Assembly: GCF_964194025.1 (NCBI RefSeq)
Contig: NC_134472.1
Coordinates: 36,766,001 to 36,830,000, forward strand
Reading direction: 5' to 3'
Length of the DNA stretch: 64,000 nt
Source: Convolutriloba macropyga
Lineage: Eukaryota
In this document: positions 2,461 through 37,565 of the stretch, in pieces
Position numbering within the stretch: the first letter of the stretch is position 1
How the letters are laid out: every line of letters begins with the position of its first letter
Position numbers and translations under genes: made by a program
Notes under the pieces: generated by a model
The model's database searches: none
Told to the model about the DNA's origin: nothing
What the model saw: only the letters and a program-made list of their open reading frames with translations

Positions 2461-5400
2461 CGACTTTCTCATTTTTGAGCAAAAATTTTACATAAGGTGT
2501 TCAACCAAAATAAAGTTGATTTTAAGTCCAACTGAAGTGTTCCATTCAAATAAAAATTTTACTTTCATGTAGATTTTTTGCGACAAATTGAGAAAATTGT
2601 TTTTGAGTTTTTCCGATGCAAAAAACGCTATATCGTTTTTTCGGGCAATTTGTGTTTTTTTTTTCGTTAATTGCTGACCTGTAGTTGCTCACGGCTATTT
2701 CTTTCATAAACCATCTACCAAAAGGTCGTTGGGGGACAATTTTTGTGTGTTTGAGATTTTTGTCGCAAAAAAATTCACGTTTTTTTTTGGATACGTCTAA
2801 CCGGGGAAAGGACTTCTAAGGTGACGTCTGGAACCTCGGGCGATCATCTCTTGGTGACGTCTGTAACCAAAAAAATGTCAGGCCTTCTTGGTCGGGTGAC
2901 GTCTGAAAACCCTTGAAAAAAAACTCTTCGTCTTTGGTTGGCTCGTCTGCAATAAGAAACTCTGTCGTAGTCTTGGATATTAGTCTTGGGGTGTGCTCAT
3001 GCCCCCTCTTTGTTTCAAAAAAAAATTAAATTTAATTCAGAAGGTTTTATGTCCTTATTATCAAGGCGGATGGTCGCCAAAATTATGTTTTAAAACATAT
3101 CTCTAGTCTAATCATTTGTTAATTTGTTAAAAGAGCACGTCTAAGTTTCACGTTGTTGGACAAAAGAGTCAAGTTTTTGTTGCAATTTTGGCGGTTTTTG
3201 AATCATCTTGAAAGTTGCAATAACATTGGCAACAACAACAAACAGTGAGATACTCATTTCGTAGGAAAAAGCTGATCAAAATTTTTTTCTATTTTTACGT
3301 CATAAACTGAAGCGTGTGAGATATCATTTTAGAAAAACACGGCGTTGGAATCTGGTTGTCAGACTCGAGTGGTTATTGCAAAAAAAACATAATTTGTCAA
3401 ATCGTAAATAAGAGATGACCAAAGAATAGGTGCAATTTCATCAAGTTGTTAGTTTGTAAAAACAGGCTGATTAGATACTTTGGTACAGATTGATGATGAT
3501 TGGCAAATGTAATGACTGCATATAAACATAGGAGCTGTTGAAATGTCAGGTTCTTTTGTCAAATATGAGTCATTGTCATTTTGTATCATAACATTATTTG
3601 TTTTCTGTTTTACAAACCAGCATAAATACAAACCAACAATGAATAGTTTGAGGTGTTACATGGGCCACTTACAATTTGCAGCTGACTACAAACTTGCTTA
3701 GTTTAATTACTGTACCCAAATTCACAATTCAGCATCAGCAATCTACGCCATCGCAGCCAGGATAAATTTCGAGGATTATGCCTAACTTCCAGGGGCCTCT
3801 GCTCCGGCATGCTCTGCTGTTTTGGAATTAATCACCAAAGAGTCAGTTCCAAAACTAACCAGCAAACTACTGTGCCTGTTTCCCAGATCTTCAAAGTGTG
3901 ATTTTTTTCTGTCGAATGCTTGGAGAGTATTTTACTCACGCTCTTTCCAACAGGACATAATAAGACACGGAAGACTCAGCAGTGTATGTTTAACATCATT
4001 GGGAACACAATTGTTGGTGATTTTCAGTTTATTTTGGACTTCAGCCCACATCGGTTCAGCATAATTTTGCCTGGTAGTTTCCTTGATCCTATGAATTTGT
4101 TTGAAAACAAAAGGAAGATTTGAGCACATCTCTCCCAGATTCCACCAACGTTCATTTAATTGGGGTGGTTCAATGTCTATTTGATATTCATCTGCATGAG
4201 ATGAAGTTACGACGTAAACTAATTGAATTTTCTAATGCTCGCATTACTGGATTTTAAGGTGTCATTTAAGCCAATAAAGGATTATCGTCACTCGGAATTT
4301 AAAAAATTACATATAAATTTTATTGGGTTCCCCAAGATTTGAATGCTTCAGTCGACCTTTCACTTGAATTATTTCATCTTTATCGACGAAGAATGACAAT
4401 TTGATGATGTTAAATGTTTTCAAGATTTCTTTACTGCTTGCTATCGACTTTGAAACATTCGGGAAGCGTTCGGTTTGAACAAATCGAAACAGTATTTGCT
4501 CTGCTTGATGGATTTCGTCCTATCCTGGGGGGGGGGGGGTTCCGGCTGCTTCTTCATGAACTTCATGCAGTAGGCGATAAGGTTTTTTATTCTAATGAAG
4601 CTGGTGTAGCGGTTCCAGTCAAATGGCTGCTTAACTTGTATTTCTGTCGCTACAGCACTGAGAGCTTGCTCGGATTCGAGTTCGTTCTCTTCACACCACG
4701 TCTTTGGCTATTCATTTTTACCCTTTTGGAGCCATGCTGGCCCGTTTAAACACACAGACTCCCGGAGTCCTTCAATAGAGATTCCTCGGGTTCCAATAAT
4801 GTCAGTGTTATTGACACCTTTGATGTTTCTCCATTGATCCATTGATGAATTTTCCATTATTTCTGAGTTCTGTTTGCAACGAATTCATTTTGTTTCTTGT
4901 GCGCTTGTTGTAACCAATGTATTACCGTTGATGAATGGGTCCAATGATAGATTTTGTCAATTCTGACATCATGTTCCCTGGGTATCTTCTTTTTGAGACA
5001 AACTCCGTAAACTGCGGCCTGGAGAACTGACTCCGATATTGATATGTGTCTGATGGGCGCTACACAACATTTCCCTTTTACATAGGCTAGTCGTCCTAGG
5101 GTTGCTTCATTTCACAGGCATGCCGCAAAACACATTGCTTCTTCTGATACATCTCAAAAGATGTGAAGTCTCAGGTTTGAACAATAAATTACGAAAAAAA
5201 TTCGATTAATTGATATCGTCCCTATTTTTCTCAACTCAGAGCACCAATCAAGGGACAGTTTTGAGTGTTCTGCTGGAAACTCTTTGTCCCATGCTTGCCC
5301 CATTGCTGCCCAAATGTTTTCAATTAGAAACCGCGTTCGTATGGTGAAGGGTGAACTTATCGCAAGCGGGTCGAACACTGCTGAGACAAACGATAGGGCA

Positions 5401-10869: not shown

Positions 10870-12360
10870 GACTTTCCATCGACCCGTAAACCTTCAAATT
10901 TTATATCCAAATTTCTGGAGAAAATTGTTTTTGATGAAATTTATGAACTTGTAAGACAACATTTGTTAAAAAATTAGTTTGTTTTCTGAAAAAGATAACA
11001 ATTGAAAAACATTACCGTTAATTAAGAATTCAAAGACCTAATCATCTTGTTTCTTGTCTTCGCCAAAGCGTTTGACATCGTACCACATAACGCCCTAACG
11101 CCCTAATGCGAAGTTTTTGTAACATCGGCATTGGAGGAAAGTTAATTAAGCTAATTTTGTTGTATCTACTGACCTGAAAATAAAATATGAAATTTAAGGA
11201 TGAATTATTGGGTTTTCGAGAAGTTACCAGTGGCGTCCAGTTCAACTTTGTCTAAATAAAATCAAATTAGAATTAATTATTGCAAAACGTACCTCATAAA
11301 CGTCAAAGGAATTATAACGGTGTTTCTTGATCACCATCTGCTAGACTAAGTGAAAAAACAACGCGACCTTGAGCTCCAAGTTTCAGCAAATCCCAGTTGT
11401 TGTACAGTGGTCTCTAAGTACAATGATCCAATTGGCCGATTTTTTTGGGAAACTCTCAAGCTGTTTCAGCTCAGTTTATGATGCCGTTATGGAAACGAAA
11501 CCATACAACATCACTGGAATCATCAAGGTCCTGTAGAAATCAATTTGATCGTCGTTGGTAAACCCATTGCAGCAATCTGGCCAAGTAAATAGAGCACTTT
11601 GTTTGCATTCATTAAACACTCTTCGACGTGGCGCTTCCAGGTAAGTTTACTTGACACTTGAATCCCTACTTCTTTCACTATCGCAGAATTCCGAAGTTGG
11701 ACATCCTTTAGTTCGGAGGACTTTTTTCCCCATAACTTAACCTTCGTGTATTTTTCCATGGCAACATCCATTTTATTTGTTTCGACCCATTTCTGGATTG
11801 CATTCAGGTCTTCTTGTGGCTCCCATTTTTGTTTTCCAGTTGCTATTCTGTTTAGATCACTAACAAAAATAAAGGGATCTGAGAACAAGAGGGCTACCGG
11901 CAAGTCATTAATAAGGATGCAGTAGAGAAGCGGGACCAATAGAAGTCCTTGAGGTACATCATTTGTCTTTGTTAGTGTTCGTTCGTGATCTTGTGTTGTG
12001 GACGCTTACCAGTTATTTGTTTCCCTTTAGGTTCAAACAGGATCTCCAGCAAACACCCTCCTACTCTTCTGCCTACATTTTTTTTAATGAGCGTGTAGTG
12101 AGATACTTTGTTGAATGCCTTAGAGAAAGGTGAGGAGAACACCACAGTCTCAGAGTCGGGAGCTTCGTCAGGGCTTCATGTATCGTTTTCAAAGAGGAAT
12201 AGAATATTGGTTGTGACCGACAATTTTTTTATGAAATCGTGCTGCCGGTTTATCAGGAGGCAGCAGAAGTGGTTGCAAAGTGCAATGTTTTAGCACTTTT
12301 CAAAAAATTTGCTCACAATATCAAACATTGAAACAGATCTTCATTTTTCAACACATCTAC
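10870..12360. mobile_element. Two opposed, decayed CR1/L2-group LINE RT fragments (+ strand ~10870-11350; - strand ~11370-12360)
   Basis: + strand FAKAFDIVPH; - strand VPQGLLLVPLLYCILINDLP (11523-11960); paralogous to 15540-17480. Confidence 0.75.
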
Positions 12361-12447
12361 CTACAAAGCTAACCCCTCGACATTTTTTGTGAGAGCAGTT
12401 TGCCCATCCTTAGTTGGCTATGTTCAATCATTTTGTCTTTCTTCCAG

Positions 12448-12675
12448 TTGCAATGGCTCACCCTCAGAATAAACGTTTTCGACATAGAGCTCATTTAATT
12501 TTTTACGTGATCACACACACAAGAATGCCTTGTGTCCCTCAGAATATTTGCATTAACGCATTGCATTCAAATGTGGATTTTGTTTACGTGGGATGTGGGT
12601 TTGGAAGTCTTCTCATAAGCTTGGCCAAACTATATCCAAATTATTATTCATTGGGATTTTGAACTGCGCAAGAAT
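12448..12675 (+). pseudogene. METTL1: Decayed duplicate of METTL1 first coding exon
   Basis: MAHPQNKRFRHRAH...VYVGCGFGSLLISLAKLYPNYYSLGF* aligns to 19578-19817; SAM-motif D->Y change, indels and TGA at 12660-12662; flanking sequence is duplicated too. Confidence 0.88.
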
Positions 12676-14399
12676 GTAAACCCGGATCTTTTTGCTCACC
12701 TAATATATTTATTTGAATAGTGCAATGGATCGCTTTCAATCAATATTTCAGCAATTTGTTTCCTCTAGGCCAATTTTTTAGACCTTTTTGTTTATTATGG
12801 GGGGAATTTGCAATAAGGATTTACTCTAACAGCGTTAATAGTTTCTAATAATACGGGTCACCGAAACTGCTGAGGAGTTAAGAAAAAATTCTTGGTGTGA
12901 ACAGCAGTTCTTGAGGGCCGTGGACACAATCTCCCTGACTCCCCATTACGCCCCAAAAACTGTTTTTTTTGGTGTGGAAGGCAATTTGGAAATCCTCCAT
13001 TTGGTAGCTAAGCCCCAGCTTATTACGGAAAACGACAGCAACTACGGAAAAAGAAAGCTTTGAAATCGTCTGAGAGCAACTCGCCGGAAGATAATTAAAC
13101 ATGTTTGACACAATGAACAGATTGGTTGGTCTAAAAGCAGTTGTAAACAGCCGCGAAGCGATAGCTGAGGCTATTATTGGACTTCAATTGGTTTTTTCGA
13201 TTTTGTAAAAATTTTCAACACAAACATTTTTTGTCACAGTGATTGACAATTAACTATTGCATATTCAATGAACTGTAATTAATTAGTTGATGTCAAACAA
13301 AATTTGTGCAATTACATTTGTCTTGTGGTCACTTTTATGCGAGTTTTTGCTTGACTGGTTTTTTGTCTGACCTTTTCGACTTTTGCTCTACAAAAACGGG
13401 ATAAACAGATAAATCCCGGAGGGCATTGAATGATTGAACAGCTCTCAGAGTTTTAAGCCTTCTAGTCTCTAATTATGCGATTCCAAAACTGTTTTGAGGA
13501 GACAAATCTATTTTGTGAAGTACTATGCGGCTCTTTGTTCTTTATCTTAAAAGTTTGACTCACCTTCAGTCCCCCCACTCACCCCTCCTCCCCCCGGACA
13601 ATTCGCCGTCCACGTTCTTCCTCCACCCGCTATTTGGACCCATCTCCTCTCAACCCTCCCAACCCTACCCCACCCCCCATCGCTTCACCCCATTTCGCTG
13701 ACCCCATAATCTTCCTAATCTCCAGCTGGCTACTACGGAAGCCCAGAGCTTGCGGATCATTTGAGAGCAATTTTTTCGATGTTGTTTTGATATGTCTGAA
13801 ACATATAATCGATTGGTCTAAGTTCAGATATAAATAGCCGCAAAGCGATAGCTCAGGCTATCATTGTCCTTCTCTTGGTTTCTTTTTGTTTCGTCAAGAT
13901 TTTTTTACGAACATAAGACGTCACAATTACTTCAAGTCTGCTTTTTGTTCATTGTTTCATGCAATTTCAACTGGATTGCGTGCCTGACATCATTGGTCAC
14001 TCTTAGTGGAAGGTGTTGTTTTTTCTTTCTCCTTATTTTGTATTTTGTCACAATTGACTTACCGTAATCCCAAAAAAGATATCCTTACTCTGATATTTAC
14101 TTTTCCAAATTTTAATGCAAATAGATTGAAACAGGTTGGGCAGACATGTCCGTAAGAAAAAAATATGAGGAGCTATTTGGGTCAACTTGTTGGTTGACCA
14201 CTGAGATCACTCATAGAGCAATGAGTCCTACTTCTAATATCATATTTTAATAACCAAAATTATAGGGAATTCTAATTGCTGTTAAATCATAGCTCAAACA
14301 TAAAAATAAAAACATTGTATTAAGCCGGGACAGATTCATTGTTGTTAAAGAATTTTTGTATTAATTTTTTCATTATTAGACTGCTGCGACTACAATGCG

Positions 14400-17300
14400 G
14401 CCAAACAAATCAATACTGGTGGTCCTTAAATGACCTCACAAATGTTCTCGAAAGTTTAAAAAATCTCTTATTTTGCAAGCTAATTCAATAACCGTGTTGA
14501 CAGGCAACAATAATTTACAGAAACAAAGTGGGCGGACACGCTCTTAGCAAAGGAGTATGAAGGAATAATTCTGGAACAACTCATAAAAACGATATCTCAA
14601 TTGTTGCATCAAGTCAGCTAGACGTCTCCCTATCCAACAATTCCAACATTGTTCTCAGTTGTTACTTTAACTATGCTCAAACTGAAAATTACAGTATTGA
14701 TGGCACGCTTTGCTCTGATCATTTTTTACTGATTTAAAATTCCTGTTTGTGAATCGAACATCCGAAAAAACAAAAAGTTTGCCTTAATTTTCTGTATTGA
14801 TTGAAAAGAGTTTAAAAAGAACATAACGAATAATCTTTTCAACTCTTATTGATATAGCAATGTCGACTTCTTTTCAGGACAATACCACCCATAGCTACTA
14901 AACAAAAATAGAGGAATTGTACCAATTGTCACTAAACATCAGGTCAGTTTGCAGCCATGGATCTGCAGGGTAACATCCCATTCGATTAAAAAATTGGTTA
15001 TTATAGACAAACTAGAGAAATTTGATTTCAATTTCAAACTGATGCTCTGAAAATTAGAGTCTGATATTGAGAAATTTATTGATACTGAGCTCTCAAATTA
15101 CAAAGCAGAAAATTTTGAAAGCAGAAATTTTAGCTAAACGTAAAAATAATTATTTTAAATCCGTAAAAAACCCACAAGTACCACCGATAATGATTTGGAA
15201 GCATCTGAAACTAACACCAATAGACAAGACGCTTTAAGTTTTTTTCACGTATCTTTAATAATAAAACAAAAACTCAAACCACTAGCACGAAAAATGTTTT
15301 AAATTGTATAAATGTTGACTCTAACTAAACAAATAAAAAATGTTTAGCGATATCAATATTCCCAAGTCTACCAAACCAGATGAAATTGGAAAGTTTTTGT
15401 TAAAAAAATTGTAGTAAATCCCTCACAAAGACGGCAACATTCTTATGCCAACCAATAATAAACAATGGAGGCTATCCCACATATTGGGAAGTAAGTTAGA
15501 TAAATCTAATTTTCAAAGACACGAACAAAATTGTGTGACCTGCTATCAACACATAAATCTTCAAAATTTAATATCAAAAGAAGTTCTGCAGGAAATTGTT
15601 TTTGATGAAGTTTACGAATTTGTAAGACACGATTTGTGTAAAAATTAGTATGGTTTTTAACAAAACAGATTGAAAACATTACAGCTCTTCTCTTTCTGGA
15701 TACAGTGTAGAAAAAATTTGATAAAAATGCAGTCAAAGACCTAAGTATCTTGTATCTTGGCTTCCCAAAAGTTTTTGACGTTATACCACATAACGCCCTG
15801 ATATAAAATTATCGTAACATCGGCATTGGAAGAAAAATAATTAAGCTACTTTTGTCTTGTCTAACAAACTGGAAACAAAACATGAAATTCAACGATAAGC
15901 TATTTGGTTTGCTAGAAACTGCCAGTGTTGTCTCACTGGGTAAGATACTAGGACCTTTTTTCATCATTTTTGTCAATGATTTGCCTGGACAATTAACTGA
16001 TGTATATTGTCTTGGTATTGTTGATCAAATAAAATTAGTAATTGAGAAACAACATAATACAGAAAACGCGACCCCAAATGGATCATTTTTGTGTAACGAT
16101 TATTAAATTAGAATTAATTATTGCAAAGCGTGTTTCTCAAATGTCAAAAGAATTATAACGTTGTCTCTCGATCAGCATCTGCTAGACTAAGTGAAAAATG
16201 TGAAAAATCAACGCGACCTTTGGCTCCAGCTTTCAGCAAATCCAAGTTTTCCAGTGGTCTCTAAGTACAATGATCCATTTGGCCGATTTTTTTGGGAAAC
16301 CTTGAAGCTGTTTCAGCTCAGTTTATGATGCCGCTATTGAGAAGAAAACATACAACACCACTGAAAGAATCAAGGACCTGTAGAGTCCAAATTTGAATCT
16401 TCTTTGTAAATCCATTGCAACATTCCTGCGCAGTAATTAGAGCACTTTGTTCGTTTTCATTAAACCTTCTTTGACGTGCGTGTTTCTTAAACGTCAAAAG
16501 AATTAAAACGTTGTCTCTTGATCACCATCTGCAAGGTTAAGTGAAAAATCAATGCAACCTCGGGCTCCAAATTTGAGCAAATCCCAGATGTTGCCCAGTG
16601 GTCTCTGAGCCCAATGATCCACTTGACCGACTTCTTTGGGAAAACCGCAACTTGTTTCAGCTCAGTTTATGATGCTGCTATGGAGAAGAAAACATACAAC
16701 ACCACTGGAAGAATCAAGGACTTGTAGAGTCCAAATTTGAGTCTTCTTTGTAAATCCATTGCAACATTCCTGCGAAGTAATTAGAGCACTTTGTTCGCTT
16801 TCATTAAACCTTCTTTGACGTGCGGTTTCCAAGAAAAACTACTTGACACTTGAATCCCTAGGTCTTCCATTATCTTTGAGTTCTGAATTTGGACATCCGT
16901 TAGTTTGAAGGACTTATCTTTTCCCATGAGCGTAATCTCCGCTCATTTTTCCATGGCAAGATCCTTTTTATTCGTTTTCATCCATTTCTGCATTATTGTA
17001 TTCATGTCTTCTTTTACCTCCCATATTTTTTTCCAATTGCTAATATTTTTAGATAATCAGCAAAATTGAATGATTTTGACAAAATCGAATGATTCTGAGA
17101 AGATATGGGCTTCCAGCAAGTCATTACTAACGATGCAGAGAAGGGGGCCCAAGAGAGATCCTTGAGGTACACCAGTTCTCACTGTTTTTGTTCGTGATTT
17201 TGTGTTTCCAACGCGTACAAATGGTTTCCCTCCCTTTAGGTAATTGAACAGGATATCCATTAAACACTTGGCTACTTCAATAGTGAGGAACTTTGTCGAA

Positions 17301-19490: not shown

Positions 19491-19577
19491 AAGTCAACCC
19501 CTCGACAGATATTTGTGAGAGCAAATTGCCCATTGTTAGTTGGTTATGTTCAATCATTTTTAATTCTTTCAGTTGGA

Positions 19578-19817
19578 ATGCCTCACCCTCAGAAAAAATA
19601 TTTTCGACAGAGAGCTCATGCAAATCCTTTAAGTGATCACACATACGAATATCCCTTGTTTCCCTCTGAAGCAGATTGGAATAGAATATTCGCATTAACA
19701 GATTGCACCCCAAAAGTGGACTTTGTTGACGTAGGATGTGGGTATGGAGGTCTTCTCATAAGCTTGGCCAAATTATATCCTGATAATTATTCACTGGGAT
19801 TTGAATTACGCGTGAAG
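19578..19817 (+). CDS. METTL1: tRNA (guanine-N7)-methyltransferase, first identifiable coding exon (80 aa)
   Basis: MPHPQKKYFRQRAHANP and VDVGCGYGGLL...GFELRVK are TRM8/METTL1 signatures; GT donor at 19818, phase 0. Confidence 0.95.
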
Positions 19818-20300
19818 GTAAACTCGGAGCTATTCGCTCCTCACCTAATATATTTATTTGAATAGTACAATGGATTGCTTTCAATCAAAATTTTAGCAAT
19901 AATTTTTATTTCTGTTGGGCAGCTTTTTAGTCCTTTCTATCTTTTTATGGGAGATTTCGCAGTACCAATGTTTCTCTAACAGCGTTAATAGTTTCTAATT
20001 ATACGAGTCAACGAAATTGCTGCGGAGACAAAACATTGGAGACAAATTCTTGGTGTGAATAGCACTTCTTCGCGGACGTGGACATGAACTCCCTGACTCC
20101 CCATTACGCTACCGAACTGTCTTTTGGTGTGAAGGGCAATTTTGTAATTTGGAACCCCCTCCTTTTTTGTACCCCTCGTTTGACTCTTAATGAGTTGATT
20201 TCATTTCCAGACGAAAAACAGTTTGAAAAACCACTTTTAAACAACACCCAATGTGATTGACAATTAACTATTGCATATTCAGTTAACTGTAATTAATTAA

Positions 20301-21732
20301 CAAAGGAGCAGTCCTGCAACTTTTGGATTACCTCGAAAAAGTTTTTAGCTGTAAATCTCAACACTAGTTTGCCATTTATTTTGACTATGAGAAGGCCTTT
20401 GATAAGGTCCCACACACTATCTTGGTTGAAAAACTTCGCCGTTTTAAGCTTAATGGTAATTTTTGCACTTTTGGAGTCGTACCTTTGCAACATGTATCAA
20501 TTTACACAAGTCAATAAGTCGAAGTCGAAACTTCTTCCATGTCTTAGCGGTGTACCACAGGGCTCCGTACTGGGTCCCTTTTTATTTTTCGTTTTCGTGA
20601 ACGATTTACCAAGCATTTTCCTTGATTCCATGGTTTAGTTGTTCGCAGATGACCTTAAAATGCTCTTCACCAACCTGAATTTCCATGACGATCTTTGGCG
20701 CCTTTATTCTTGGAATATCTGCAATGGAATGATTGCAAATTCATGTAAGACTAAATGTTTGCACTTTATTATTATTATTATTATTATTATTATGACTTCG
20801 TGGATATGCCACTGGAATGTTATTTCCGCTGTTAGGTTCTAGGATGTGCACGACAGTTTTCACAGATACAAATGAATGTCCATGTGCAAGGATTCTGCTC
20901 ATTCCAGTTTCTTTCCAAATAGCTCCACATGTATTCAATGAGTTTCCTCTTCAGTTGCTGCTCACAGAAGAAGTCGAAGTCATGGCTCATCTAAATGGAA
21001 AACGTCTCTTCACACAAGGATCTGGGTGTATACATCAGTAATGATCTGAAATGGGGTTTCCACGTTACTTCTAAACTCTGTAAAGCTCGACAATGTTTCT
21101 TCAGTCTGAAAGCGAAAATACCTTTCAATACTCCGTCTCATGTCAAGCTCCACCTTTACCGGAGCCTTGTCCTCTCCGTACTTTTATATGGGTTTCCTGC
21201 GTGGTATCCCGATGTATCCATGCTTAAAAAATTAGAGAATTTCCAGCGCTCCTGCTTCTTATGGATATTTGGACGAAAATCATCTTACCTGAAGCAACTT
21301 AAAGACAACAATTTTGTGCCACTCTGCTATCAACTCGAATATATTACTTTCTCTTTTCTATCGCAACTGATGTTAGATAAGTACAACTATGATCACTCAC
21401 AGTATGTAGTATTTCAGGAGCCTTCCCAGTGTTTGCGCGGATCATCCACAAATGTCCTGCAATTAAAGAACCACCATAAGCACGCTAGCATCTCATTCTT
21501 CGGTCGTTCAGTTTTAATTGCCAACTATTAGTTCAGAAACAAATTCATCGATGACTTTGACAGCTACAACAAGAAAGCTCTGAAGAGCTACCTCATGCGA
21601 AAAACATTCGATCCAGAAATTACATGTACATTCTTTATTTGCTGTGTCTGTAACTCATGCAAACTTATCAAGAGTATATGCTAAAATAATAATGGTTCTC
21701 GAAAGAAAATAAAGTCTTTCTCTCTCTCTCTC
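20301..21732 (+). mobile_element. 5'-truncated CR1/L2-group LINE in METTL1 intron 1, ending in a (TC)n tail
   Basis: DYEKAFDKVPH, GVPQGSVLGP, FADDLK, KDLGV and a C-terminal CTFFICCVCNSC; absent from the paralogous sequence at ~13285. Confidence 0.9.
20767..20993 (-). mobile_element. 3' end of a second LINE nested antisense in the first, with a (TAA)n tail
   Basis: Minus strand reads LIEYMWSYLERNWNEQNPCTWTFICICENCRAHPRT* followed by (AAT)n; it interrupts the host frame between KTKCLHF and MENVSSHKDLGV. Confidence 0.8.
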
Positions 21733-22255
21733 TAATTGATCTCAAACAAATTTTGTGCAATTATATTTGTCCTGTGGTCACTTTTATGCGTCTTTTCGCT
21801 GGACCGCTTTTTGTCTGACCTTTTCGACTTTTCTTCCTCAAAAACGGGATAAACAGGTAAATCCCGGAGGGCATTAAGTGAATGAACAGCTCTCAGAGCT
21901 TTACGCCTTCTAGTCTCTAATTATGCGATTCCAAAACTGTTTTGAGGAGACAATTCTATTTTGTGAAGTACTATGCGGCTGTTTGTTCTTTATCTTAAAA
22001 GTTTGACTCACCTTCAGTCCCCCCACTCACCACTCCTCCCCCCGGACAATTCGCCGTCCCCGTTCCTCCTCTCAACCCTCCCAACCCTACCCAACCCCCC
22101 ATCGCTTCACCCCACTGAGCTGACCCCATAACTTTCCTAAACCCCAGCTGGCTACTACGGAAGCCGAGAGCTTGCGGATCGTTTGAGAGCAATTCGTTCG
22201 ATATTATTTGGATATGTCTGAAACATTTAATTGATTGGTCTAAGTTCTGTTATAA

Positions 22256-22684
22256 ATAGCCGCGAAGCGATAGCTGAGGCTATTATTGTCCTTCTCTTGG
22301 TTTTTTTATTTCGTCAAGATATTTGTTATTTACACTGAATTGCGTGCGTGACGTCATTATTCACTCTTAGTGGAGCGAGTTATTTGTTCATTCTCATTAT
22401 TTTGTATTTTGTCACAATTGACTTACCTCACTCGCAAAATGATACCCTTACTCTGATATTGACTTTTCCATACTTTAATTCAAATAGATAAGGTCAACTG
22501 AGTGTATATTACTCTAATCGAAGGTTATTTAAGATTAGCTAATAGAAGCAGTAATAAGTTATACAGATTCCTAATAAAAATTTAACATAGCAGCCCTTGA
22601 TGAAGACAATAAATGTTTTTTTGGCCTTTTTGAAACTGTACGTAGCTATCGCGGCTTTTTTCTGGCAATCTGCCAGCTATGTTT
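22256..22684 (+). mobile_element. Helentron/DINE-1-like non-autonomous element
   Basis: Left end ATAGCCGCGAAGCGATAGCTGAGGCTAT; right end TCGCGGCT..CTGGCAATCTGCCAG-CTATGTTT (subTIR plus stem-loop). Confidence 0.65.
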
Positions 22685-23584
22685 AATTAATTGATTGAAA
22701 ATTAATTAAATAGCAAAATTTGAAAATAAAAGGGACGAAAACCTCTTCCTTAAAATGACATTTGTTCGGGGACTTCAGCCAGCATTTTTGGTTCAAAAAG
22801 TTAAGCAGCATGGGAACTAGTAATGTAAGGGAAAACAGCAAGCGTTGCCCTGGAGATTTCGGCTACTGAAAATTTTGAGCATTGGGCCAAAAGTAGTGAT
22901 TTTCCTTTGTTTATTAAAAAACATTGCTTTTTTAAACTTGTCAATTTCAATTAATTAATTGTTTGAACTCAATTAGCAGTAGATTCATTGTTTCATTTTC
23001 CCCAAAAAATTAATTGCTACTCTTAATTGCTAATCCCTGTCCACTCAAGAGTCGAACTGTGTAATCTATGTACTGTTTTGTTCATTTTTGGGAGAGGAAA
23101 GAATTCCACGTGGTTGTTTTTAATTGTCTCCCTATTTGAGGATCAAGGTTTCTTAATTGCTGACCCATGCCCACCCAAAATCTAAACTATTTAGTCTCTT
23201 CTCTTTTGCTCACTTGACTTCCACGCGATGTTGAGTTTTGAATTGTCTCCTTATTTGAGGATCGATCGAGGTTTCGGGACTATTTTATTGGTGAAATCGG
23301 AAAATGTGTTTTGATGCAGAGTGACGAAGGCTCGCGACCTAATATTCAGCCAAGGAAGTTGTTTTTAAGTTACTCTTTCATTATGCAATGTTGACACAAG
23401 TTGCGTTTACTCTGATAGATTTTGTCGTCCAATTAGTTTTTGTGCCATTTTTATTCTCATGAGATCATTAATTTTAATGAATTTAATTGAAGCTTTCTTT
23501 GCTGTTTGTGACTGATCGTTTGTGAAATTCTTCAGTGAAATTCTGAAAGTAGTGAAAAAAGGGGGGGTCTACCGCACAGTTTTA

Positions 23585-23668
23585 GGATCCCTCCCATCCA
23601 GTCTCGAACCTAAGTCAAAATTACACTTCAACAACTCTATATTAATGCCTAAACCACTGCACTACCAG
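23585..23668 (-). ncRNA. tRNA-like Pol III element (SINE head or tRNA pseudogene)
   Basis: Minus-strand A box TAGTGCAGTGG (23654-23664) and B box GGTTCGAGAC (23601-23610); no convincing cloverleaf. Confidence 0.55.
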
Positions 23669-23961
23669 AACTAACTGCTGTAAGGTTCAAACGCAATATA
23701 ATTCGTAACTGTTACGGTTGTTAACACATTATAAAGTGAGTATTTCAACTGAAAATATGGTCATAAAATAAAGTCAACTTGGTTCAGTTGGTTAACCTCG
23801 CTCGCAATCCCAACTGAATCAGGTCGACTTTTCGAAGCCCCATAGTTTCCACCAGATTCCAACTAAAACTGAGAAAATTCCACTGAGACGGAGCAGGTCT
23901 TGGAATTTTCCCATTATCTTTCTTTCGATAATTTTTTTATCAAAAGCAAATAAAACCCGCC

Positions 23962-23968
23962 TATAAAA
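23962..23968 (+). promoter_or_regulatory. TATA box of the 279-aa ORF
   Basis: CCCGCC-TATAAAA about 35 nt upstream of an A-rich ACAAAAATG start context. Confidence 0.55.
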
Positions 23969-24002
23969 CAGGCCTTTTTCTTACAATAGCAACACAACAA
24001 AA

Positions 24003-24842
24003 ATGTTGAGCAACCCACCGAGTAGCTTTCGATTCATTATATACAGTGCCCAAATTCTACTTCCTGCTCAGCAAACTGTTGAGTCCCTATCGGTCAAGAG
24101 ACGTAAAACAGAACATGCCCAGTTAACCTTGACCGCTCAGCGACAACCGAAAGGCCTAGCTCATTGGATTGACCAATTCACCGATTGGCAGTTTGCAGTC
24201 GTCAACCATGAGCCTAACAAAATTGAACCAAGTGCATCCTTCAGATGGTGTGATGACATCTCCACGGAGCACCAGCACATCATTGTCCATTCAAACGATA
24301 ATCCTAAACACATGGAGAAAACTATCAAGTCCTTTATTCGACATGAAAGCAAAGTACTCAACGAAATCAGAGCACGAGTGTTTGTGCCCCAAAGCGCCTT
24401 TCAGACATTTAATCAACAGTTCTTGCGATTCAACGTATCGGAGATTTCAAGACGAGGAGACATCTTCGAAGAGTTCATACGAAACACTGATTCTTTAGTT
24501 GAAGACATACCAAAGCGAAGCCAGCAAATGGACTTGGTGTGGGAAATTGAGAGATCTAGTCCAGCTCGCAGAACCGAAATCAATACATTAACCGAGTACC
24601 AGAAGCGACTAATTGCAAAAATTGAAAGTCTCGAGAGCACTGACTCCCCATTCAAGGACACCATTGAGGCATTTGTAGACATTCTGGCAGCCGGTTGGGG
24701 ATCATTATACCGAACTGATCATTCAATGTTTATTGAAGTCCATTGTGGACTCACAAATGCACAATGTTCATGTTGGGAATGCTGGGATGCAGCAACGGAG
24801 GATGAAGAAATTATGGAAAAAACCAATGACTCACCAAAGTAA
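24003..24842 (+). CDS. Intact intronless 279-aa protein of unknown function with an HUH-like motif (FAVVNHE...HQHIIVH) and a C-terminal His/Cys cluster; nested in METTL1 intron 1
   Basis: Long uninterrupted ORF in DNA where chance ORFs are short; visibly more GC-rich than its flanks; TATA box upstream; AATAAA at 24941. Confidence 0.7.
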   Translation: MLSNPPSSFRFIIYSAQILLPAQQTVESLSVKRRKTEHAQLTLTAQRQPKGLAHWIDQFTDWQFAVVNHEPNKIEPSASFRWCDDISTEHQHIIVHSNDNPKHMEKTIKSFIRHESKVLNEIRARVFVPQSAFQTFNQQFLRFNVSEISRRGDIFEEFIRNTDSLVEDIPKRSQQMDLVWEIERSSPARRTEINTLTEYQKRLIAKIESLESTDSPFKDTIEAFVDILAAGWGSLYRTDHSMFIEVHCGLTNAQCSCWECWDAATEDEEIMEKTNDSPK

Positions 24843-25829
24843 ACAAAAAACATAACACGAGATAAGAACTATTAGATAACTTGATCATTATCTATTTCAT
24901 ATCCTTTTAAATCAGTCGCATGTTCCAATCTGCTGACATTAATAAAGTTTTGTGTAATTTCAAGCTTGTCTCTCGAGCGTTTCCACAAAACGAAAAGTCG
25001 AAAAACTAACACCATGCCTGCCCTAATGCTAGCATCCTTAAACCTCAGCAGGCTACAACCGAAGCCAACCACTCGCTGGTCGTGAGAGCAAATTGCTCGA
25101 GGTTAGTCGGTTATGTTTTGACAAGAATCTGGTAAGACGATTTTGAATAATTTTATTTGTGGCATTTTGAGCCATTTTGCATCGGTCTGCTGTCATATTT
25201 TTGTGTAAAGATCAATTTTAACTTGATAATTTTTGGGGTGCTCTTTTTGTTCGATGTCAAATTTTCAGAAACATTGATAGGTTTAGAATTGTGCATTTGA
25301 GCTTAATTTGGAAACTCTTTCTAATAGTCTGCTGTGCCTTAAATATTCATCTTTGACATTAAATTTTTGTATAGAGTTTACAGCAAGTTGAATAAGCGGC
25401 TCTCTGATTTAGAAATTGTCCACTGATGTCCGCATTGGCTGCAATCGCAACTTTTCTTTTGAATTTTCAATGCTTACCACGTATGTTCATGAAATTTTGA
25501 TGCAGGGAAGACCATAAATTGAATCGGGTGAAATGATTTGCAATGCAATGTTAAAATTGTTATTATTTTGAGGTAAATGTTTGCTGTTACTTTTTTTTGC
25601 TTGGGCTGAATCATTTTTTGAGGTAACATTTCATAACAAGAGATAGGCAATGAGATCAAATGAACAATTGATACTTTTACTTTTTCTATGCTTGAATATT
25701 CAGGGGAAAAGTTTCTCCATAGTTCCTGCTTTCTACAAGCAACATGAAAATTAATGAACCCAGGGACTTAGTGCCTGACACAAGTGAGCATGTGCCCGAG
25801 TGTTAGGAACAAGAAGTTGTAGAGCAGTT

Positions 25830-25995
25830 GAATCTTTTCCGTTTGTCCCCCCCCCCCCCCTAATACGTTATGCACCCCCAGTTACAGAGCACGTGTCTTT
25901 ACACAGTAAAACATTATGAAAAAATATAGCACGTGCGTCTGGGGGTTGCAAATAATATGCACCCACTAAGCTGGGGGCACAAATGGAAAAGATCC
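25830..25995. mobile_element. MITE related to the 18568-18699 element
   Basis: TIRs G(A)ATCTTTTCCGTTTGTCCCC / GGGGGCACAAATGGAAAAGATCC; shares subterminal CACTAAGC..GGGGG; flanks GAGCAGTT/GAACATTT match 6 of 8 as a decayed TSD. Confidence 0.7.
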
Positions 25996-26384
25996 GAACA
26001 TTTTTATGCGATCTTCGGGCGTTATAACAGTTATAATCTATTCAACTAACACTGCCGTCCAATCTACTTAATTACGTTGTCCTAATCTATTTCACAATTT
26101 GTGGTAGTCTGCTTATTTCCATCGTGCTGCTTCTTGCTCGATTTTAACCAAAATTAAATTGGTTGAGCTGCCTGCGTCTTTTGCTGTTTTTCTGCACTAT
26201 GGGTCTTGTAAACTCTTAATTTCACAGATTCTAATTACATTCAACATGTGAGTTTGTTTTCGATGGATATATTTTTTGACAAACGTATAGGTTTTATAAA
26301 AAAACCAATCAAAGGCCAATTTTTCTGTTTACCAGTTTCTTGTTATCTGAAGTATATAGACAGTTACTATAACTGCTTTTGTAG

Positions 26385-26681
<297 letters not shown>

Positions 26682-29610: not shown

Positions 29611-30133
29611 ATAGCTGCGAAGCTGTAAGCTGAGCGAAGCTATATTGCGGTGCTCTTGGTGTTTTTTTGATTCGTCGTCTGACGCTCTTTTTTCGTTTTA
29701 CATTGTTCACACAGCAAAGCAGAAAAAGTCAAATTTTCTCACTGACTTCTTCCTCTCACTAACGGCATTTGCACGCGTGACGTCATTTCTCACTCGCTTT
29801 AACAAAATTTTTAAGTTATTAGCGTGATTAGATTTTGATCATATGTGACTTACCTCACTCAATAAAATGACTTTAGCACTTTAAAAATTAAATTTAATTT
29901 GAATTTGTTTAAGGTCAAAGGAACTCATTTGTGTAGTAAAGGTCCCTAATAAGAGGCTTCTGCGAAATGAATTTTAACAAGCTTTATTAATTTATCGCTG
30001 AATGTTTTTTACCTAGTTTTTTGAGCGGCGTCGATTTTTTTTCCTATTTAGATCTGTATCTGTTTCTATCTCTATTATATGGCACGCAGGTCTATTCTTT
30101 CGCAGCTATTCCGGCAATCTGCCGGCTATGTTT
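29611..30133 (+). mobile_element. Helentron/DINE-1-like non-autonomous element
   Basis: Perfect subTIR pair ATAGCTGCGAA / TTCGCAGCTAT followed by hairpin CCGGCAATCTGCCGG; T-runs at both ends; last ~170 bp nearly identical to 59063-59234. Confidence 0.75.
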
Positions 30134-31863
30134 AAAACAATTACTTTCAAAATAATGAGAACCAATAGGAATCAACTAACATATACCATAGGTTTACGAT
30201 TAACAATGCTTCTATTGAAGGGAATGAAGAACTGTCGGTAATCAATTTTTTATGAGGTTACAAAAAGAACAACAGAGACAACCAACAAAAAATCAAATAA
30301 AACTTGCCAGAAAACGCTTTCGAAGCCGTAAAGCATACTTTGGCCCTCAAAATATGTTCGATTGTACCTTCCTTGAACACCGATAATGTTTTATGAGACG
30401 TCTCATTATTGAAACTAGGTAACAAGTAGACAAAAGAAAAAAGGCAAAATTAAGTTACTTATCGAAAAAAAATCCAAAGTCATAAAAGCCATATTAATTA
30501 CAAAAGAAAAAATTAAAGATGTTCGTTTATTCTTCTTTATTCTTCCAAAGAAAGCCCTTGAAACTTGCATTTATCCAGAATAGGTTACAAAAAGGACGTC
30601 AAATATGACAAAAATCAAAAACAACTTGACTTTTTTTGTGAAAAACCCGTGTCGAAGCCAGTTAAGTAATAACGAATCCTTTAAAAACATTAGATTTTAT
30701 GACACCAATCCCTTTTGACAGCTTCCCTTGACACCAATGATGTCATATTTGACCTGTAATTAACGAGGCTATGTAACAAAAAGACAATAAATGGAAAGAA
30801 ATTGCGAATTTGAAAAGTGTTCTTTTTTTGGAAAACAATTGTTTTCCAAGTCATGAAATCCATCAGCTATCTACCAATATCAGAACATTGGCTCATATTT
30901 TCTTCCATTAAAAGCCAATGAAACCCGGTCATTGTACAGAAAATTTCAATTGACCAGAAAGACAAAGTAAAAACGACAGTTAAAGACAAAATTTTAAAAA
31001 TTCAATTAAGTTCTTCGAGAAAGTAGTGTCGAAGCAGTTCAAACCATAATCTTTTTCGTTAAGGATTTTAATTTTATCGTTTTTGCCGTATTATGTAACG
31101 CCAATGATGTGATATATGAACTGTCAATTACGTGATTATGTGACAAAACTAGTAAACGTGAAAATTTGGCAATTATCTAAAAATAAAAAAATGTGAAATC
31201 TAGTGGTATCAAAGCCAGAAAACCATAATTAAGTTGGAAAACCGCTATAGAGATTATTACTTAAATAAGTAGAACGAAGAAGCATTTTTTCTTTGCTGAC
31301 ACTAAGCAACAAGTTGACAAATTTAAGAAAAAATAAGGCAAAATTTAAAAACCATTTTTAAAAGTCAAATATTTTTAAAAGTCAAAAACGACCATAAGCT
31401 TCCAAGTCAAAAAACTAGATGCTTTTCTTTGGAGCTGCTTAGGAAGGCAATTGAACCTATCACTACTGAGCTCTGATTTGAAATGCTCTGTTTTTCATTT
31501 AATATGAAAAAGATTGACTAGTTTAATTTAAAAAAAGCCGACTGATTACAATTCGGAACAATTAGGAACTGCCTGTAATGCTCAACGTGAAAAGGTCATT
31601 TGAAGGTGAAGTTTTCTTCCCATAACAGTTTCCTCTCCCTATTCGAACTACAGACACCATCTATCCACCTACTCCCACGCCCCACCTGCTATTCTACTGG
31701 CTATGTTTTTATGCAGATTTTTCTCTTGACCGTTTTTGAGCTTTTCTTCTCGAATAGTCTTTGACTTCTTCACGCATTTCTGATTTTTGAGTGATTTCAA
31801 TTGCTCTTTCCGAAATAAAGTTTATTGTTCAAACAATAACGATTCTTAGAGATGCGATTACAA

Positions 31864-33915: not shown

Positions 33916-35403
33916 TTAAGTGTTTGTTCCGAGAAGGACATCACGAAAAAGTGATACTTTGGTCCTCCCCAATGCTTTTGTAAGTGTGTCTGCCGGCATG
34001 CGATCGGTAGGTAAGTAGTTTAGCTCTAATAGTCGACTTTGGACTAAATTCCGAACGAAGTGCACTTTTAATGAAAAGTGCTTTGTCTTTCCGTTATTCA
34101 TCGAGTTTTTACTTAGAGCAATACAAGCTTGGTTGTCTACAAAGACGTTTACTGGCTGCTGGATTTCTAAATCTAATTCACGTAATAGGTTAACTAAATG
34201 TACTGCTTCTTTACTGGCCTCTACTACGGCGTTAAGCTCAGCCTCAGCTGTTGAAGTAGATACACACTTTTGTAACTTGCTAGCCCAACTGATTGCACCT
34301 GAACTATTATTAAGTTTAAAACAAAAACCACATGTACTTTTTCTATTGTCTATGTTGCCTGCCCAATCTGAGTCTGAAAATCCTGTTAAATCCAGTTTCT
34401 CACTTTTTCTAAAAACCATCTTCTCTGATTTTGTACCTTTTAGGTAACGTAAACACCCTTTTGCCGCATTCCAATGGCGCCTTCCAGGATTTTCAACAAA
34501 CGAACTCAATAAATTGGCTGCGTGCGCAATATCTGGTCTACTTGTTAATGCCAAATACTTCAAACATCCCACTATACCCCTATAATCACATGATTGCATT
34601 TCTCTATGCTCATTGCTGCCTATTTCTGGTGAATCTAATTTTGATAGTTTCAGGCTAACATCTAATGGTGTTTCCAGTGTCTTTGATTCGCTCATGTTAA
34701 ACTTCTCTTGTAATTTTTCTACATATGCTTCTTGGCTTAGCATAATATCGTTTTGTGTTCGCTCAATTTTTATATTTGAGAACCAGCTAAGATCTCCATA
34801 ACTGCTAATTTGAAATTGCTCACTAACTTTATTTTTAAAGTTTTCACAAAAGTCTTCCTGCAATCCTAATATCACCATATCATCTACCCAAAGACACACT
34901 AATCCCTCTATACCATTTTCTCCTTTCTTTATGAAAAGACACTCATCTTGAATAGCCGGCGTGAAACCTAATTGGTTGAGAAAAGTTTTGATTGTTAAGT
35001 ACCAATTTCTACCGGACTGTTTCAATCCATATAAACTTTTCCTCAGCTTACAAATTAAAGGATTTCCTTGCTTGTCAAACTTTTCAAACCCTTCGGGCTG
35101 TTGCATAAAGATTTCTTCTTCGATGTCAGCGTTCAAGTATGCTGTTTTGATATCCATTTGTTTTAACTCGGTGTTTTTATATACTGCGTAGCTTATCAGT
35201 ACTCGAATTGTTGAGAGGCGTGTTGTTGGTGAGTAGGTTTCGTTGTAATCCCGACCTGGAACTTCGCTAAATCCTTTTGCTACGAATCTTGCCTTATACC
35301 TTGTTATCTCCCCACTAGGACCAAACTTAAGAGCAAAGTGCCAGCGGCTACCAATGGGTTTATTTCCTTTGTTCTCTACCAGCTCCCAAACTTTATTTTC
35401 CAC
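33916..35403 (-). CDS. Copia reverse transcriptase (RVT_2) + RNase H, separated from the upstream pol by a stop codon
   Basis: YKARFVAKGF, QMDIKTAYLN, LRKSLYGLKQSGRNW, WVDD, FSDSDWAG, STAEAE, ADTLTKAL. Confidence 0.93.
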   Translation of the reverse strand: MENKVWELVENKGNKPIGSRWHFALKFGPSGEITRYKARFVAKGFSEVPGRDYNETYSPTTRLSTIRVLISYAVYKNTELKQMDIKTAYLNADIEEEIFMQQPEGFEKFDKQGNPLICKLRKSLYGLKQSGRNWYLTIKTFLNQLGFTPAIQDECLFIKKGENGIEGLVCLWVDDMVILGLQEDFCENFKNKVSEQFQISSYGDLSWFSNIKIERTQNDIMLSQEAYVEKLQEKFNMSESKTLETPLDVSLKLSKLDSPEIGSNEHREMQSCDYRGIVGCLKYLALTSRPDIAHAANLLSSFVENPGRRHWNAAKGCLRYLKGTKSEKMVFRKSEKLDLTGFSDSDWAGNIDNRKSTCGFCFKLNNSSGAISWASKLQKCVSTSTAEAELNAVVEASKEAVHLVNLLRELDLEIQQPVNVFVDNQACIALSKNSMNNGKTKHFSLKVHFVRNLVQSRLLELNYLPTDRMPADTLTKALGRTKVSLFRDVLLGTNT

Positions 35404-35412
35404 TAATGAGTT

Positions 35413-36450
35413 TTATTCCAACTTCATTGCCTCGTACCAGTTTTTATCCCTAATTGCTTCATCAATAGACTTAGGTAGCAATTCGTTGTTAACAATTTCA
35501 CCAAGGAAAGCTACCGGGTTTAAATCTCTATCACCATCTGAATGATGCTTGTTGACTATCTGCTCTTTCTTTTCTTTGACTTCAATAAACATTTCGTTTT
35601 CGTTGAAAGTTACATTGCGGGATTTTCTAACCTTAAAGACCCCTTTGTCATTTGGAATACCTACCAGATAAGTCTTACTATTGTCTGAAGACCCTAAGAA
35701 TATTCCTTTTTGAGAAGTTCTATCAATCTTACCACGAAATTTTTTTTCAACATGAACGAAAGCTGAACAACCAAACACTTTGATTGATTCTAAGTTAGGT
35801 TTCTTCTTGTACATTGCCTCAAAAGGTGTCTTCTGAATACCTGAATGGAAACAAAAATTTTCAATCTCACTTGCCATGTTAAGTGCATATGGCCAATACT
35901 CTTTTTGTAAACCTGACTGCTCAATAAGACATCTAGCCATTGGGGTGATTGTCCCCCAATTCCTCTCAACCTTTCCGTTTTCTTGTGGTGTATACGGTGC
36001 CGAGAACTCAACCCTAATGCTTTTTCGTCAACATAATTGTTTTATGTCATTTGACACATATTCCCCTGCACCGTCACAAACTAAGGTTCCTGGTTGTCCT
36101 ATGTCTGCAAAGAACTGTTCATTTTTTTCAAAGGCCTCGTCCCTTGTCCTCAAAAAATATAGTTTCTGATATCTGCTAAAACTATCCACGAACCCTATTG
36201 CATACCTATGACCATCAACCGCTTCCGGTTGGATGGGCCCTAATATGTCGGTATGAACAATTTCTAAGACTTCACTTGCTCTTGTTCCTGAGTCTCTTGG
36301 TACTGGAAGTTTCTTTGATTTATTTAGCTGACATATTTATCAGTTTGCTAAATCATGCTCGTTTACTTTTAGCCCCACTGCGTGATCTTTTAATTTGTAT
36401 ATGTCCTCAACATTGTTATGACCCAAACGCTTATGCCACAAACTAAGGGG
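35413..36450 (-). pseudogene. Copia integrase region, frameshifted
   Basis: LWHKRLGHNN; APYTPQENGKVERNW; KVFGCSAFVH; SRNVTFNE. Confidence 0.88.
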
Positions 36451-36500
36451 ATCTCCATTTGCTAAGTTGAACTGCTCGCCGTAATCAATGTTGTGCCAGA

Positions 36501-37565
36501 TTAACTATCTCTTTCCTCGAAAGGGAAAACTGTTCCGTTCTTAGTTCGTATTTCTAAAGTCCCACTAAAGACGACCTCATTGCCTGTTGCTCTAAGTTTT
36601 GACACTGATATCAGATTCCTTGTGTTGTTGGGAACAAGCAACGCATTATTTAATCTTATTTTTCGCGCTAAACCATTGGAATCCAAAACCCTAATTTCAA
36701 CTGTTCCTTTCCCACTAATTGAACTTTTACTGCTGTTTGCATTAGTGATGGTACCAGAATACTCCTTGTCTATATCTATGAATAAACTTTCATCTTTAAT
36801 CACATGACTGGTAGCACCTGAGTCTAAAACTAGCTCATTTGCAAGGTTGTTTTCCGACGTTTGAAAGAAGGAAAAGATCTCTTCTTCTTCTTCTTCTTCT
36901 TCTTCTAAATTCTGCTCCTCAACTAAATTTTGCGTGCCCCTCTGGTTGGTTCGCCTGCTTTGACTTACAAATTTTTTCTCATGTTTCTGTTGTTTTCTAC
37001 AAAATTTAGCTATATGTCCGTGCTCACCACACTTAAAACATTTCATTTGAGAAGCTTTGGTTTGTTCAAGAATCGTTTTCTTAAACCTACATTCTTTTGC
37101 GATATGTCCCATTTTCTCGCAGTTGAAACATTTCCGTTCCTTATTAAAGAATACGCTCTCTGTTTTGGTTTTTACATTTTCATTATCGAAGTTTATCAGG
37201 TCTCGTTTTATTTCCTCTAGAGTTTTCTCGTCTTTGCTGTATTTCACGAGTGTTGCGAAATTTTCATATTCCTTCGGGAGCCCTTTGAGAATTATTATTG
37301 AGACAAACATTTTTTTACTAATTCCTTCATTCACTAGTGTTAAGTTGTAATGCATATCATCTGCTCTGGTGAGATAATCTACTATACTCTCACTTGAAGT
37401 CTTCCTAAGGCTAGTTAATTGCGCTATCAATTTGTGTAGCTGGGGTCTCTCAAAACTTTTGAAGCGTTTACACAGTACATCCCAAGCTCTAGTACCATCA
37501 CCCTTATGTGGTCTAAGAAAAAGAACTGATGTTTTGTCTAAAGCCTGAACTAACTCGTACCACAA
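36501..37565 (-). CDS. Copia gag (two CX2CX4HX4C knuckles) + aspartic protease
   Basis: ILKGLPKEYE, CFNCEKMGHIAKEC, CFKCGEHGHIAKFC, LDSGATSH, NLISVSKL; gag N-terminus appears shortened. Confidence 0.9.
   Translation of the reverse strand: MWYELVQALDKTSVLFLRPHKGDGTRAWDVLCKRFKSFERPQLHKLIAQLTSLRKTSSESIVDYLTRADDMHYNLTLVNEGISKKMFVSIIILKGLPKEYENFATLVKYSKDEKTLEEIKRDLINFDNENVKTKTESVFFNKERKCFNCEKMGHIAKECRFKKTILEQTKASQMKCFKCGEHGHIAKFCRKQQKHEKKFVSQSRRTNQRGTQNLVEEQNLEEEEEEEEEIFSFFQTSENNLANELVLDSGATSHVIKDESLFIDIDKEYSGTITNANSSKSSISGKGTVEIRVLDSNGLARKIRLNNALLVPNNTRNLISVSKLRATGNEVVFSGTLEIRTKNGTVFPFEERDS

Follow-up and report, generated by a model that had tools for sequence, protein, structure and literature searches.

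Polintons have been described as elements of 13–25 kb with terminal inverted repeats (TIRs), 5–8 bp target duplications, and genes for a protein-primed family B DNA polymerase (pPolB), an integrase, a protease, and an ATPase (PMC10748475). Adintoviruses, described by Starrett et al. 2021 (PMC8502044), have been reported with accessory genes that include the conserved "Adintoc," of unknown nature, and the zinc-motif "Oncoid," which is defined by an LxCxE motif with a neighboring CK2 site, paired CxxC motifs, and a position upstream of PolB (PMC8502044). Here we analyze a stretch of 64,000 nucleotides (the window) from Convolutriloba macropyga (NCBI RefSeq assembly GCF_964194025.1, contig NC_134472.1, positions 36,766,001 to 36,830,000, forward strand), in which an intact open reading frame (ORF) of 279 codons lies within the first intron of a METTL1-like gene. 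An initial annotation, made from the letters of the window, had presented this ORF, which we call gene X, as an orphan gene with an HUH-like motif.

A Probable Polinton Fragment in a METTL1-Like Intron

We conclude with good confidence that the 1.46-kb segment at 23548–25005 is a dead-end left-terminal fragment of a very young, multicopy Polinton/Maverick (adintovirus-like), lying in sense orientation in intron 1 of the METTL1-like gene. Nothing weighs against Polinton identity save that capsid genes were not recognized by Pfam. The features concerned, in window coordinates, are:

19578–19817, + strand: coding part of exon 1 of a METTL1/Trm8-like tRNA (m7G) methyltransferase gene; Pfam Methyltransf_4, E = 4.6e-7, profile positions 3–41; GT donor at 19818
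19818–26384, + strand: intron 1 of the METTL1-like gene, 6,567 bp, GT...AG; holds the element fragment in sense orientation, a long interspersed nuclear element (LINE) remnant, and interspersed repeats
23548–25005, + strand: probable left-terminal Polinton/Maverick fragment, 1,458 bp, 99.5–99.8% identical to the left ends of six loci
23548–23608, + strand: left TIR, ~61 nt, beginning 5′-AG; fragment positions 1–61 match the reverse-complemented right ends of five full copies at 81%
23566–23579, + strand: 14-nt motif GGTCTACCGCACAG in the terminal repeat, a candidate protein-binding site, from exact-match comparison of element ends
23962–23968, + strand: TATA box of gene 1, 41 nt 5′ of the ATG
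24003–24842, + strand: gene 1 (gene X), 279 aa, intact
24920–25005, + strand: remnant of gene 2, first 29 codons kept, broken once, by truncation; 135 aa in full copies
26385–26678, + strand: exon 2 of the METTL1-like gene; Pfam Methyltransf_4, E = 7.4e-30, profile positions 48–128; AG acceptor ending at 26384, GT donor at 26679

The two exons, matching consecutive parts of one profile on the same strand across a GT...AG intron, bear out the placement of the ORF in METTL1 intron 1.

Loci are labeled as follows: L001, L004, L005, L006, L008, and L009 are sibling copies; L002 and L003 are diverged lineages; L015–L019 are five loci with whole elements (L005 and L015 being one copy); L010 and L012 are distant relatives from other samples; and L007, 100% identical over 9,001 bp, is the window locus itself. 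All six siblings align to the fragment over its full 1,458 bp with 3–6 differences, and the sequence to its left differs in each sibling copy. Copies L001–L009, the diverged L002 and L003 included, start at the same first base and share the same terminal sequence, opening 5′-AG. At 25005 similarity to the siblings ends in the window, while the sibling copies run on. This breakpoint falls within gene 2, such that the 135-aa products of L001 and L002 match the window by residues 1–29 alone (tblastn); gene 2 was called at its full 135 aa in 4/6 sibling loci and at 86 aa in L005. An AATAAA at 24941–24946 had been listed with the ORF, and the hexamer is indeed present, but because it lies within the coding remnant of gene 2 it is not evidence for a dedicated 3′ end.

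When all proteins of three related elements were compared with the 64-kb window by tblastn, gene 1 and the start of gene 2 were the sole element genes found, and neither a right-end repeat nor an inverted copy of the terminus was found in the window. An internally deleted, nonautonomous element with both ends was rejected, as the window lacks the right end. The segment thus amounts to the left ~9% of an element whose full size is ~16.3 kb. Other copies, such as L001 and L006, are also truncated to various extents, and such fragments are therefore common in this genome.

Several smaller features surround the fragment. The same intron holds, at 20995–21531 (+), a 178-aa ORF that has no Pfam match and by sequence resembles the C-terminal tail of a LINE reverse transcriptase. 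An interspersed repeat of ~350 bp occurs just 5′ of the fragment (22328–22692) and again at 29769–30135 and 52023–52488, with 73–87% identity between copies; it is also found near other Polinton copies, for example at 470–844 and 8476–8804 of L002. Just right of the fragment, a 36-nt stretch (25082–25117) is 86% identical to 19515–19550, directly 5′ of the METTL1 start codon, and a third copy at 22183–22218 is 69% identical; this may be a small repeat or chance.

Full-Length Siblings and Their Membership among Polintons

Whole elements at the five full loci measure 16,280–16,326 bp and have ends of the form 5′-AG...CT-3′ that are inverted over ~61 nt at 81% identity. Matching 6-bp target duplications flank 4/5 of them (L016, L017, L018, and L019), and none matching was found in L015. 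Proceeding 3′ from gene X, the siblings encode products of 135 and 92 aa, a Pox_A32-type ATPase, a 207-aa product, an rve integrase, products of ~346, 195, and 445 aa, and a Peptidase_C5 (adenain-like) protease; the opposite strand carries a small ORF and a polymerase of 1,254–1,375 aa. The integrase domain (PF00665) was recovered at E = 1.1e-10 in L016 and 3.3e-11 in L003. Pox_A32 (E = 3.5e-8) and Peptidase_C5 (E = 7.3e-5) were found in L003, and both also occur on L005, L008, L009, and L015–L019. Reverse-strand products of 837–883 aa in L005/L015 and L019 match Pfam DNA_pol_B_2, the protein-primed family B polymerase, whereas hmmscan at E <= 0.05 did not return this domain for the 1,374-aa product of L016. 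Products of 445 and 346 aa, considered for the double jelly-roll major and single jelly-roll minor capsid genes, had no Pfam match.

Given the polymerase, integrase, ATPase, protease, inverted ends, and 6-bp duplications, the sibling elements are therefore Polintons/Mavericks. Their likeness to the animal-type, adintovirus-like group consists of a 16.3-kb length, TIRs, 6-bp duplications, PolB, an rve integrase, an A32/FtsK-type ATPase, and an adenain-like protease; adintoviruses themselves are defined by an OTU domain and an integrase chromodomain. They differ from described Polintons in their short TIRs (~61 nt, 81%, vs. a published 100–1,500 bp), in a polymerase that carries an Endonuclease_7-like stretch, and in capsids unrecognized by Pfam.

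The Endonuclease_7 match falls at residues 528–592 of the 1,374-aa polymerase of L016 (gene at 11013–15140, − strand; E = 4.1e-5, just above the curated cutoff), whose N terminus also has a weak C2H2 finger match. In 5/5 full copies (L015–L019, ~16465–17228, + strand), two small ORFs of 116 and 92 aa with no Pfam match separate the polymerase gene start from the right TIR. Finally, L005 contains a second polymerase fragment (2963–5220, + strand) in opposite orientation, ~4 kb 5′ of the L005/L015 copy; together with the unmatched 6-bp duplication, this suggests nested or rearranged insertions around L005/L015.

Intactness and Age of the Window Copy

The initial annotation had read the ORF itself accurately: at 24003–24842 (+) it begins with ATG, runs for 279 codons with zero stops, and is preceded by TATAAAA, and its 279-aa product contains FAVVNHE (residues 64–70), HQHIIVH (90–96), and, toward its Cys-rich C terminus, HCGLTNAQCSCWEC (247–260). 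With the base composition of the window (stop probability 0.065 per codon), the six frames of 64 kb should by chance contain ~6e-5 ORFs of such length; the frame is therefore not chance, and a chance ORF was rejected.

Orphan status was also rejected. The ORF lies in a 1,458-bp repeat copy with many near-identical siblings that share a left terminus, and 0.2–0.5% of sites differ between fragment and siblings. The exact window protein occurs on six contigs of European Nucleotide Archive assembly ERZ25071359; five further copies, four or five of which are long, thus encode it unchanged, and its cluster at 90% protein identity has 42 members, with at least 42 in that same assembly.

An intact ORF with a promoter-like TATA box amid decayed repeats is also what would be expected of a domesticated host gene whose integrity is maintained by selection at the locus. 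We give this explanation almost no credence, as the copy differs from its siblings at merely 3–6 of 1,458 nt, encodes the same protein as five other copies, and is one of >=42 cluster members in the assembly, and its intactness is expected from age alone. The frame is intact because the copy is young, as the near-identical siblings show, and selection at this locus is not needed. Short Logan contigs yielded no evidence of expression: L020 and L021 lack poly(A), and one of them ends in sequencing adapter, so that they are genomic scraps.

Gene X Is a Conserved First Gene of the Lineage

Relatives of gene X numbered 27 in a single-sequence search, 43 in an exhaustive HMMER scan that covered 1.84 billion representatives regardless of length, and 121 in a profile search. 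They are unnamed, have no Pfam domain, and are all <=344 aa, with zero helicase fusions. No NCBI-listed homologue appeared in the search tables, P0058 alone tracing to an NCBI genome assembly (GCA_024449665.1), and IMG/VR viral contigs, when scanned, yielded no relative. Comparison of the window protein and 8–23 relatives with Pfam, PDB sequences (single and profile), and PHROGs gave nothing meaningful, the best matches being DUF7430 (E = 0.046) and an immunity protein (E = 0.021).

The position of the gene is fixed. In every readable context, gene X comes first after the left terminus, with an unchanged gene order behind it, and the first-gene position is kept even in L010 and L012, where gene X is 21–22% identical. 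The window copy, L002, L014, and the distant L012 have TATA-like boxes at −41 to −53 from the ATG. Ratios of nonsynonymous to synonymous substitution rates (dN/dS) are informative for two pairs only, synonymous sites being saturated between deep lineages, and equal 0.09 for the window vs. L013 (dS 1.3) and 0.23 for L002 vs. L014 (dS 0.21). These values reveal purifying selection on the family, and gene X is therefore a functional element gene. Our comparisons show that in this Polinton lineage its position is syntenically fixed and its sequence under purifying selection.

The 14-mer GGTCTACCGCACAG near the terminus is also widely kept. It is present exactly in the left ends of L001–L009, L013, and L014, whose gene X products span 49–100% identity, and in both ends of L015–L019, whereas the distant L010 and L012 lack it.

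Conserved Residues and Protein Architecture

Conservation was counted in an alignment of 49 diverse gene X members, numbered as in the window protein. Conserved positions are:

H69: 47/49
C83: 48/49
H90: 48/49
H92: 46/49
K109: 46/49
G152: 47/49
W180: 43/49
F217: 48/49
G233: 45/49
H240: 46/49
C255: 45/48
C257: 46/47
C260: 45/47

C248, in contrast to these, is poorly kept (8/49). The columns include two sets of four potential metal ligands, kept at 92–98%, one in the core (H69/C83/H90/H92, H-x13-C-x6-H-x-H) and one toward the C terminus (H240/C255/C257/C260, H-x14-C-x-C-x2-C). Thus the pairing of a strand histidine with H-x-H and hydrophobics, singled out in the initial annotation on the basis of one sequence, is the most conserved feature of the family, and the histidine conservation that it had named as a test is borne out. 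The residue between H90 and H92 varies (His in 18, Tyr in 10, Gln in 9, and others); the window clade has Gln there. Three hydrophobic positions follow. Columns 213, 238, and 251 are 88–92% Ser plus Thr. The protein has an isoelectric point (pI) of 5.6, with 6.4 for the core and 4.5 for the C-terminal region.

AlphaFold2 models built with the family alignment divide the protein as follows:

Residues 9–17: N-terminal strand
Residues 19–48: disordered basic linker, with KRRK at 32–35 (24096–24107)
Residues 49–190 (24147–24572): alpha/beta core with H69, C83, H90, and H92
Residues 191–262 (24573–24788): helical and hairpin region with H240, C255, C257, and C260
Residues 263–279: acidic tail

Mean predicted local distance difference test (pLDDT) scores are 76.7 for the whole protein and 81.7 for residues 1–190 (predicted template-modeling score 0.78), exceeding 90 over most of 50–165. 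The modeled core is a five-stranded alpha/beta domain with FAVVNHE and HQHIIVH on neighboring strands, beyond which two helices, a hairpin, and a final helix are modeled at lower confidence. Because the near-invariant C83 adds a fourth ligand to the three histidines, the core set looks like a closed, structural zinc site and not an open catalytic one.

Comparison with HUH Endonucleases

The initial annotation had proposed a self-standing, helicase-less HUH-like mobile gene. What we found instead is the first gene of a Polinton that has its own PolB and rve integrase; an accessory gene of such an element is the very alternative that had been named as contrary to that proposal, though gene X is unnamed. 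Any likeness to HUH Rep proteins (adeno-associated virus [AAV] Rep, parvovirus NS1, CRESS-virus Rep, and pMV158 RepB) and to the papillomavirus E1 DNA-binding domain would lie in the five-stranded alpha/beta core, with H-x-H on a central strand followed by hydrophobics and a further histidine on the adjacent strand. With Foldseek, the full model was compared with PDB and BFVD, and the core-domain model with PDB. The full model has six HUH proteins among its 50 best PDB matches, all of these weak: AAV2 Rep, two parvovirus NS1 nuclease domains, vientovirus Rep, wheat dwarf virus Rep, and plasmid pMV158 RepB. In the core-domain search the E1 DNA-binding domain, which is nuclease-dead, came up nonsignificantly, and the named BFVD matches, also nonsignificant, are nearly all Rep or parvovirus NS proteins. 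The model thus hints at a Rep/origin-binding-like topology of the core. Rep/NS1 and origin-binding domains predominate among the weak matches and are the commonest of those with names, but none reaches significance (no match at E <= 0.001, best query-normalized TM score 0.36), and profiles add nothing: no Rep, relaxase, or transposase Pfam family matched the window protein at E <= 10 or any of 23 members at E <= 1, nor was there a PDB or PHROG match.

Could gene X nonetheless be an active HUH endonuclease, one that lacks a helicase and nicks single-stranded DNA as a Rep or transposase? The near-invariant H-x-H with its three hydrophobics, the third histidine on a neighboring strand, and the lean of the structure matches would fit. 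So would column 131, right after the fourth strand and ~39 residues past H-x-H, which is Tyr in 32/48 members. All of these belong to a large distant clade, however; in the window clade the position is Ser (window), Asp, Glu, or Asn, the Tyr being lost or never present, and yet this abundant clade is itself under purifying selection. Across the family no further Tyr column is kept, column 14 (Y14 in the window) being Phe in 30/44. Further differences from HUH Rep proteins are that C83 as a fourth ligand would close the metal site, that the middle residue of H-x-H, bulky and hydrophobic in the HUH motif, is the polar Gln in the window clade, that no Rep, relaxase, or transposase profile matches, and that a helicase is lacking, in an element that already has a polymerase and an integrase and replicates with its own polymerase. 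With no conserved nucleophile, and for these other reasons, an active HUH nuclease is very unlikely; judged from the alignment, the missing nucleophile largely refutes it. The other form of the proposal, a catalytically altered HUH derivative, is no more than a possibility.

Possible Roles of the Gene X Product

A tentative reading is that the gene X product is a nuclear, zinc-binding, noncatalytic factor with a Rep/origin-binding-like core that recognizes the element's own DNA, most plausibly the terminal repeat. KRRK in the disordered linker resembles a nuclear-localization motif, the core would recognize the conserved terminal repeat of its own element, and it would help to start replication or transcription from the element ends without nicking DNA. 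We favor a role of this kind because of the origin-binding likeness, KRRK, the position beside the terminus, and the conserved 14-mer. Several points weigh against it, all at the level of function. Foldseek scores are poor (E >= 0.01 in BFVD and >= 0.1 in PDB); ferredoxin-like and RRM-like proteins (Cas5/Cas7, ACT-type domains, and an anti-CRISPR) score equally; a pI of 5.6 is unusual for a DNA binder; and the 14-mer could equally be an integrase site. More specifically, the core may be a nuclease-dead descendant of an HUH Rep origin-binding domain, recruited by a polymerase-bearing Polinton to recognize the 14-mer, a proposal that we regard as speculative and on the doubtful side.

Almost as likely as this DNA-acting role, and so equally tentative, is that gene X encodes an early regulatory or host-interaction protein comparable to adenovirus E1A or to adintovirus Oncoid or Adintoc, that is, a nuclear zinc-binding adaptor or activator that would work through protein contacts and not by binding the ends. 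The first-gene position by the terminus with its own conserved TATA box, KRRK, the two four-ligand Cys/His sets, the acidic C-terminal region and tail with an overall pI of 5.6, and the lack of any enzymatic family match are all consistent with such a protein. Like Adintoc and Oncoid, gene X belongs to the conserved but unannotated accessory genes of adenovirus-like integrating elements, and its product has Cys/His motifs and an acidic tail. It differs in having neither LxCxE nor paired CxxC (its Cys motif is C-x-C-x-x-C), in lying at the end opposite PolB, whereas Oncoids have been described upstream of PolB, and in having no named or NCBI-listed homologue; no deposited, named adintovirus protein was matched at HMMER sensitivity. 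An LxCxE-type Oncoid was rejected on the motif and positional differences.

Polintons are not known to have a terminal protein or an origin-recognition factor, and gene X might instead serve the protein-primed polymerase as its terminal (priming) protein or as a cofactor in priming. It is a terminal and presumably early gene, Ser/Thr columns 213, 238, and 251 are well kept, and family members of 220–340 aa are within the size range of phage terminal proteins. On the other side, the searches brought up nothing similar in sequence or fold to terminal proteins, a class that has no sequence signature, the gene is not adjacent to the polymerase gene, and the 1,254–1,375-aa polymerase has an ample N terminus that could fill the role, leaving this an improbable assignment.

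Implications

For the genome, the insertion is an ordinary event, a recent truncated Polinton in the intron of a housekeeping gene, and it would be wrong to keep listing the feature as an orphan HUH gene. What the genome does contain is a very young Polinton family, with dozens of copies >99% identical, several with matching target duplications and with mostly open gene arrays, and it may be a good place to describe Polinton biology. The conserved first gene of the whole Polinton lineage is unannotated in public databases, with ~120 relatives in many assemblies, and its family is a reasonable candidate for a Polinton origin-recognition or terminal protein. Were descent from a nuclease-dead Rep true, it would represent a previously unrecognized gene exchange between Rep-encoding small replicons and Polintons, and gene X would be a contender for the role of the missing origin-recognition factor in protein-primed eukaryotic elements.

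Other Features of the Window

Retroelements occur elsewhere in the window. A Copia-type long terminal repeat retrotransposon at 33916–37565 (−) has long ORFs that include RVT_2 (495 aa, E = 4.7e-65), the SH3-like tail of a retroviral integrase, and a gag in which two CCHC knuckles accompany a Pol beta-barrel; it looks young. A LINE at 55552–58148 (−) has an Exo_endo_phos_2 endonuclease ORF (201 aa) and an RVT_1 ORF (565 aa), and is bracketed by runs of N at 54724–54961 and 58226–58425 (masked or gap stretches). A DUF1759 gag-like ORF at 7537–8034 (−) belongs to a remnant of a BEL/Pao-type retroelement. Finally, an RWD-domain ORF at 63004–63429 (+; E = 1.9e-8) is probably a host exon.

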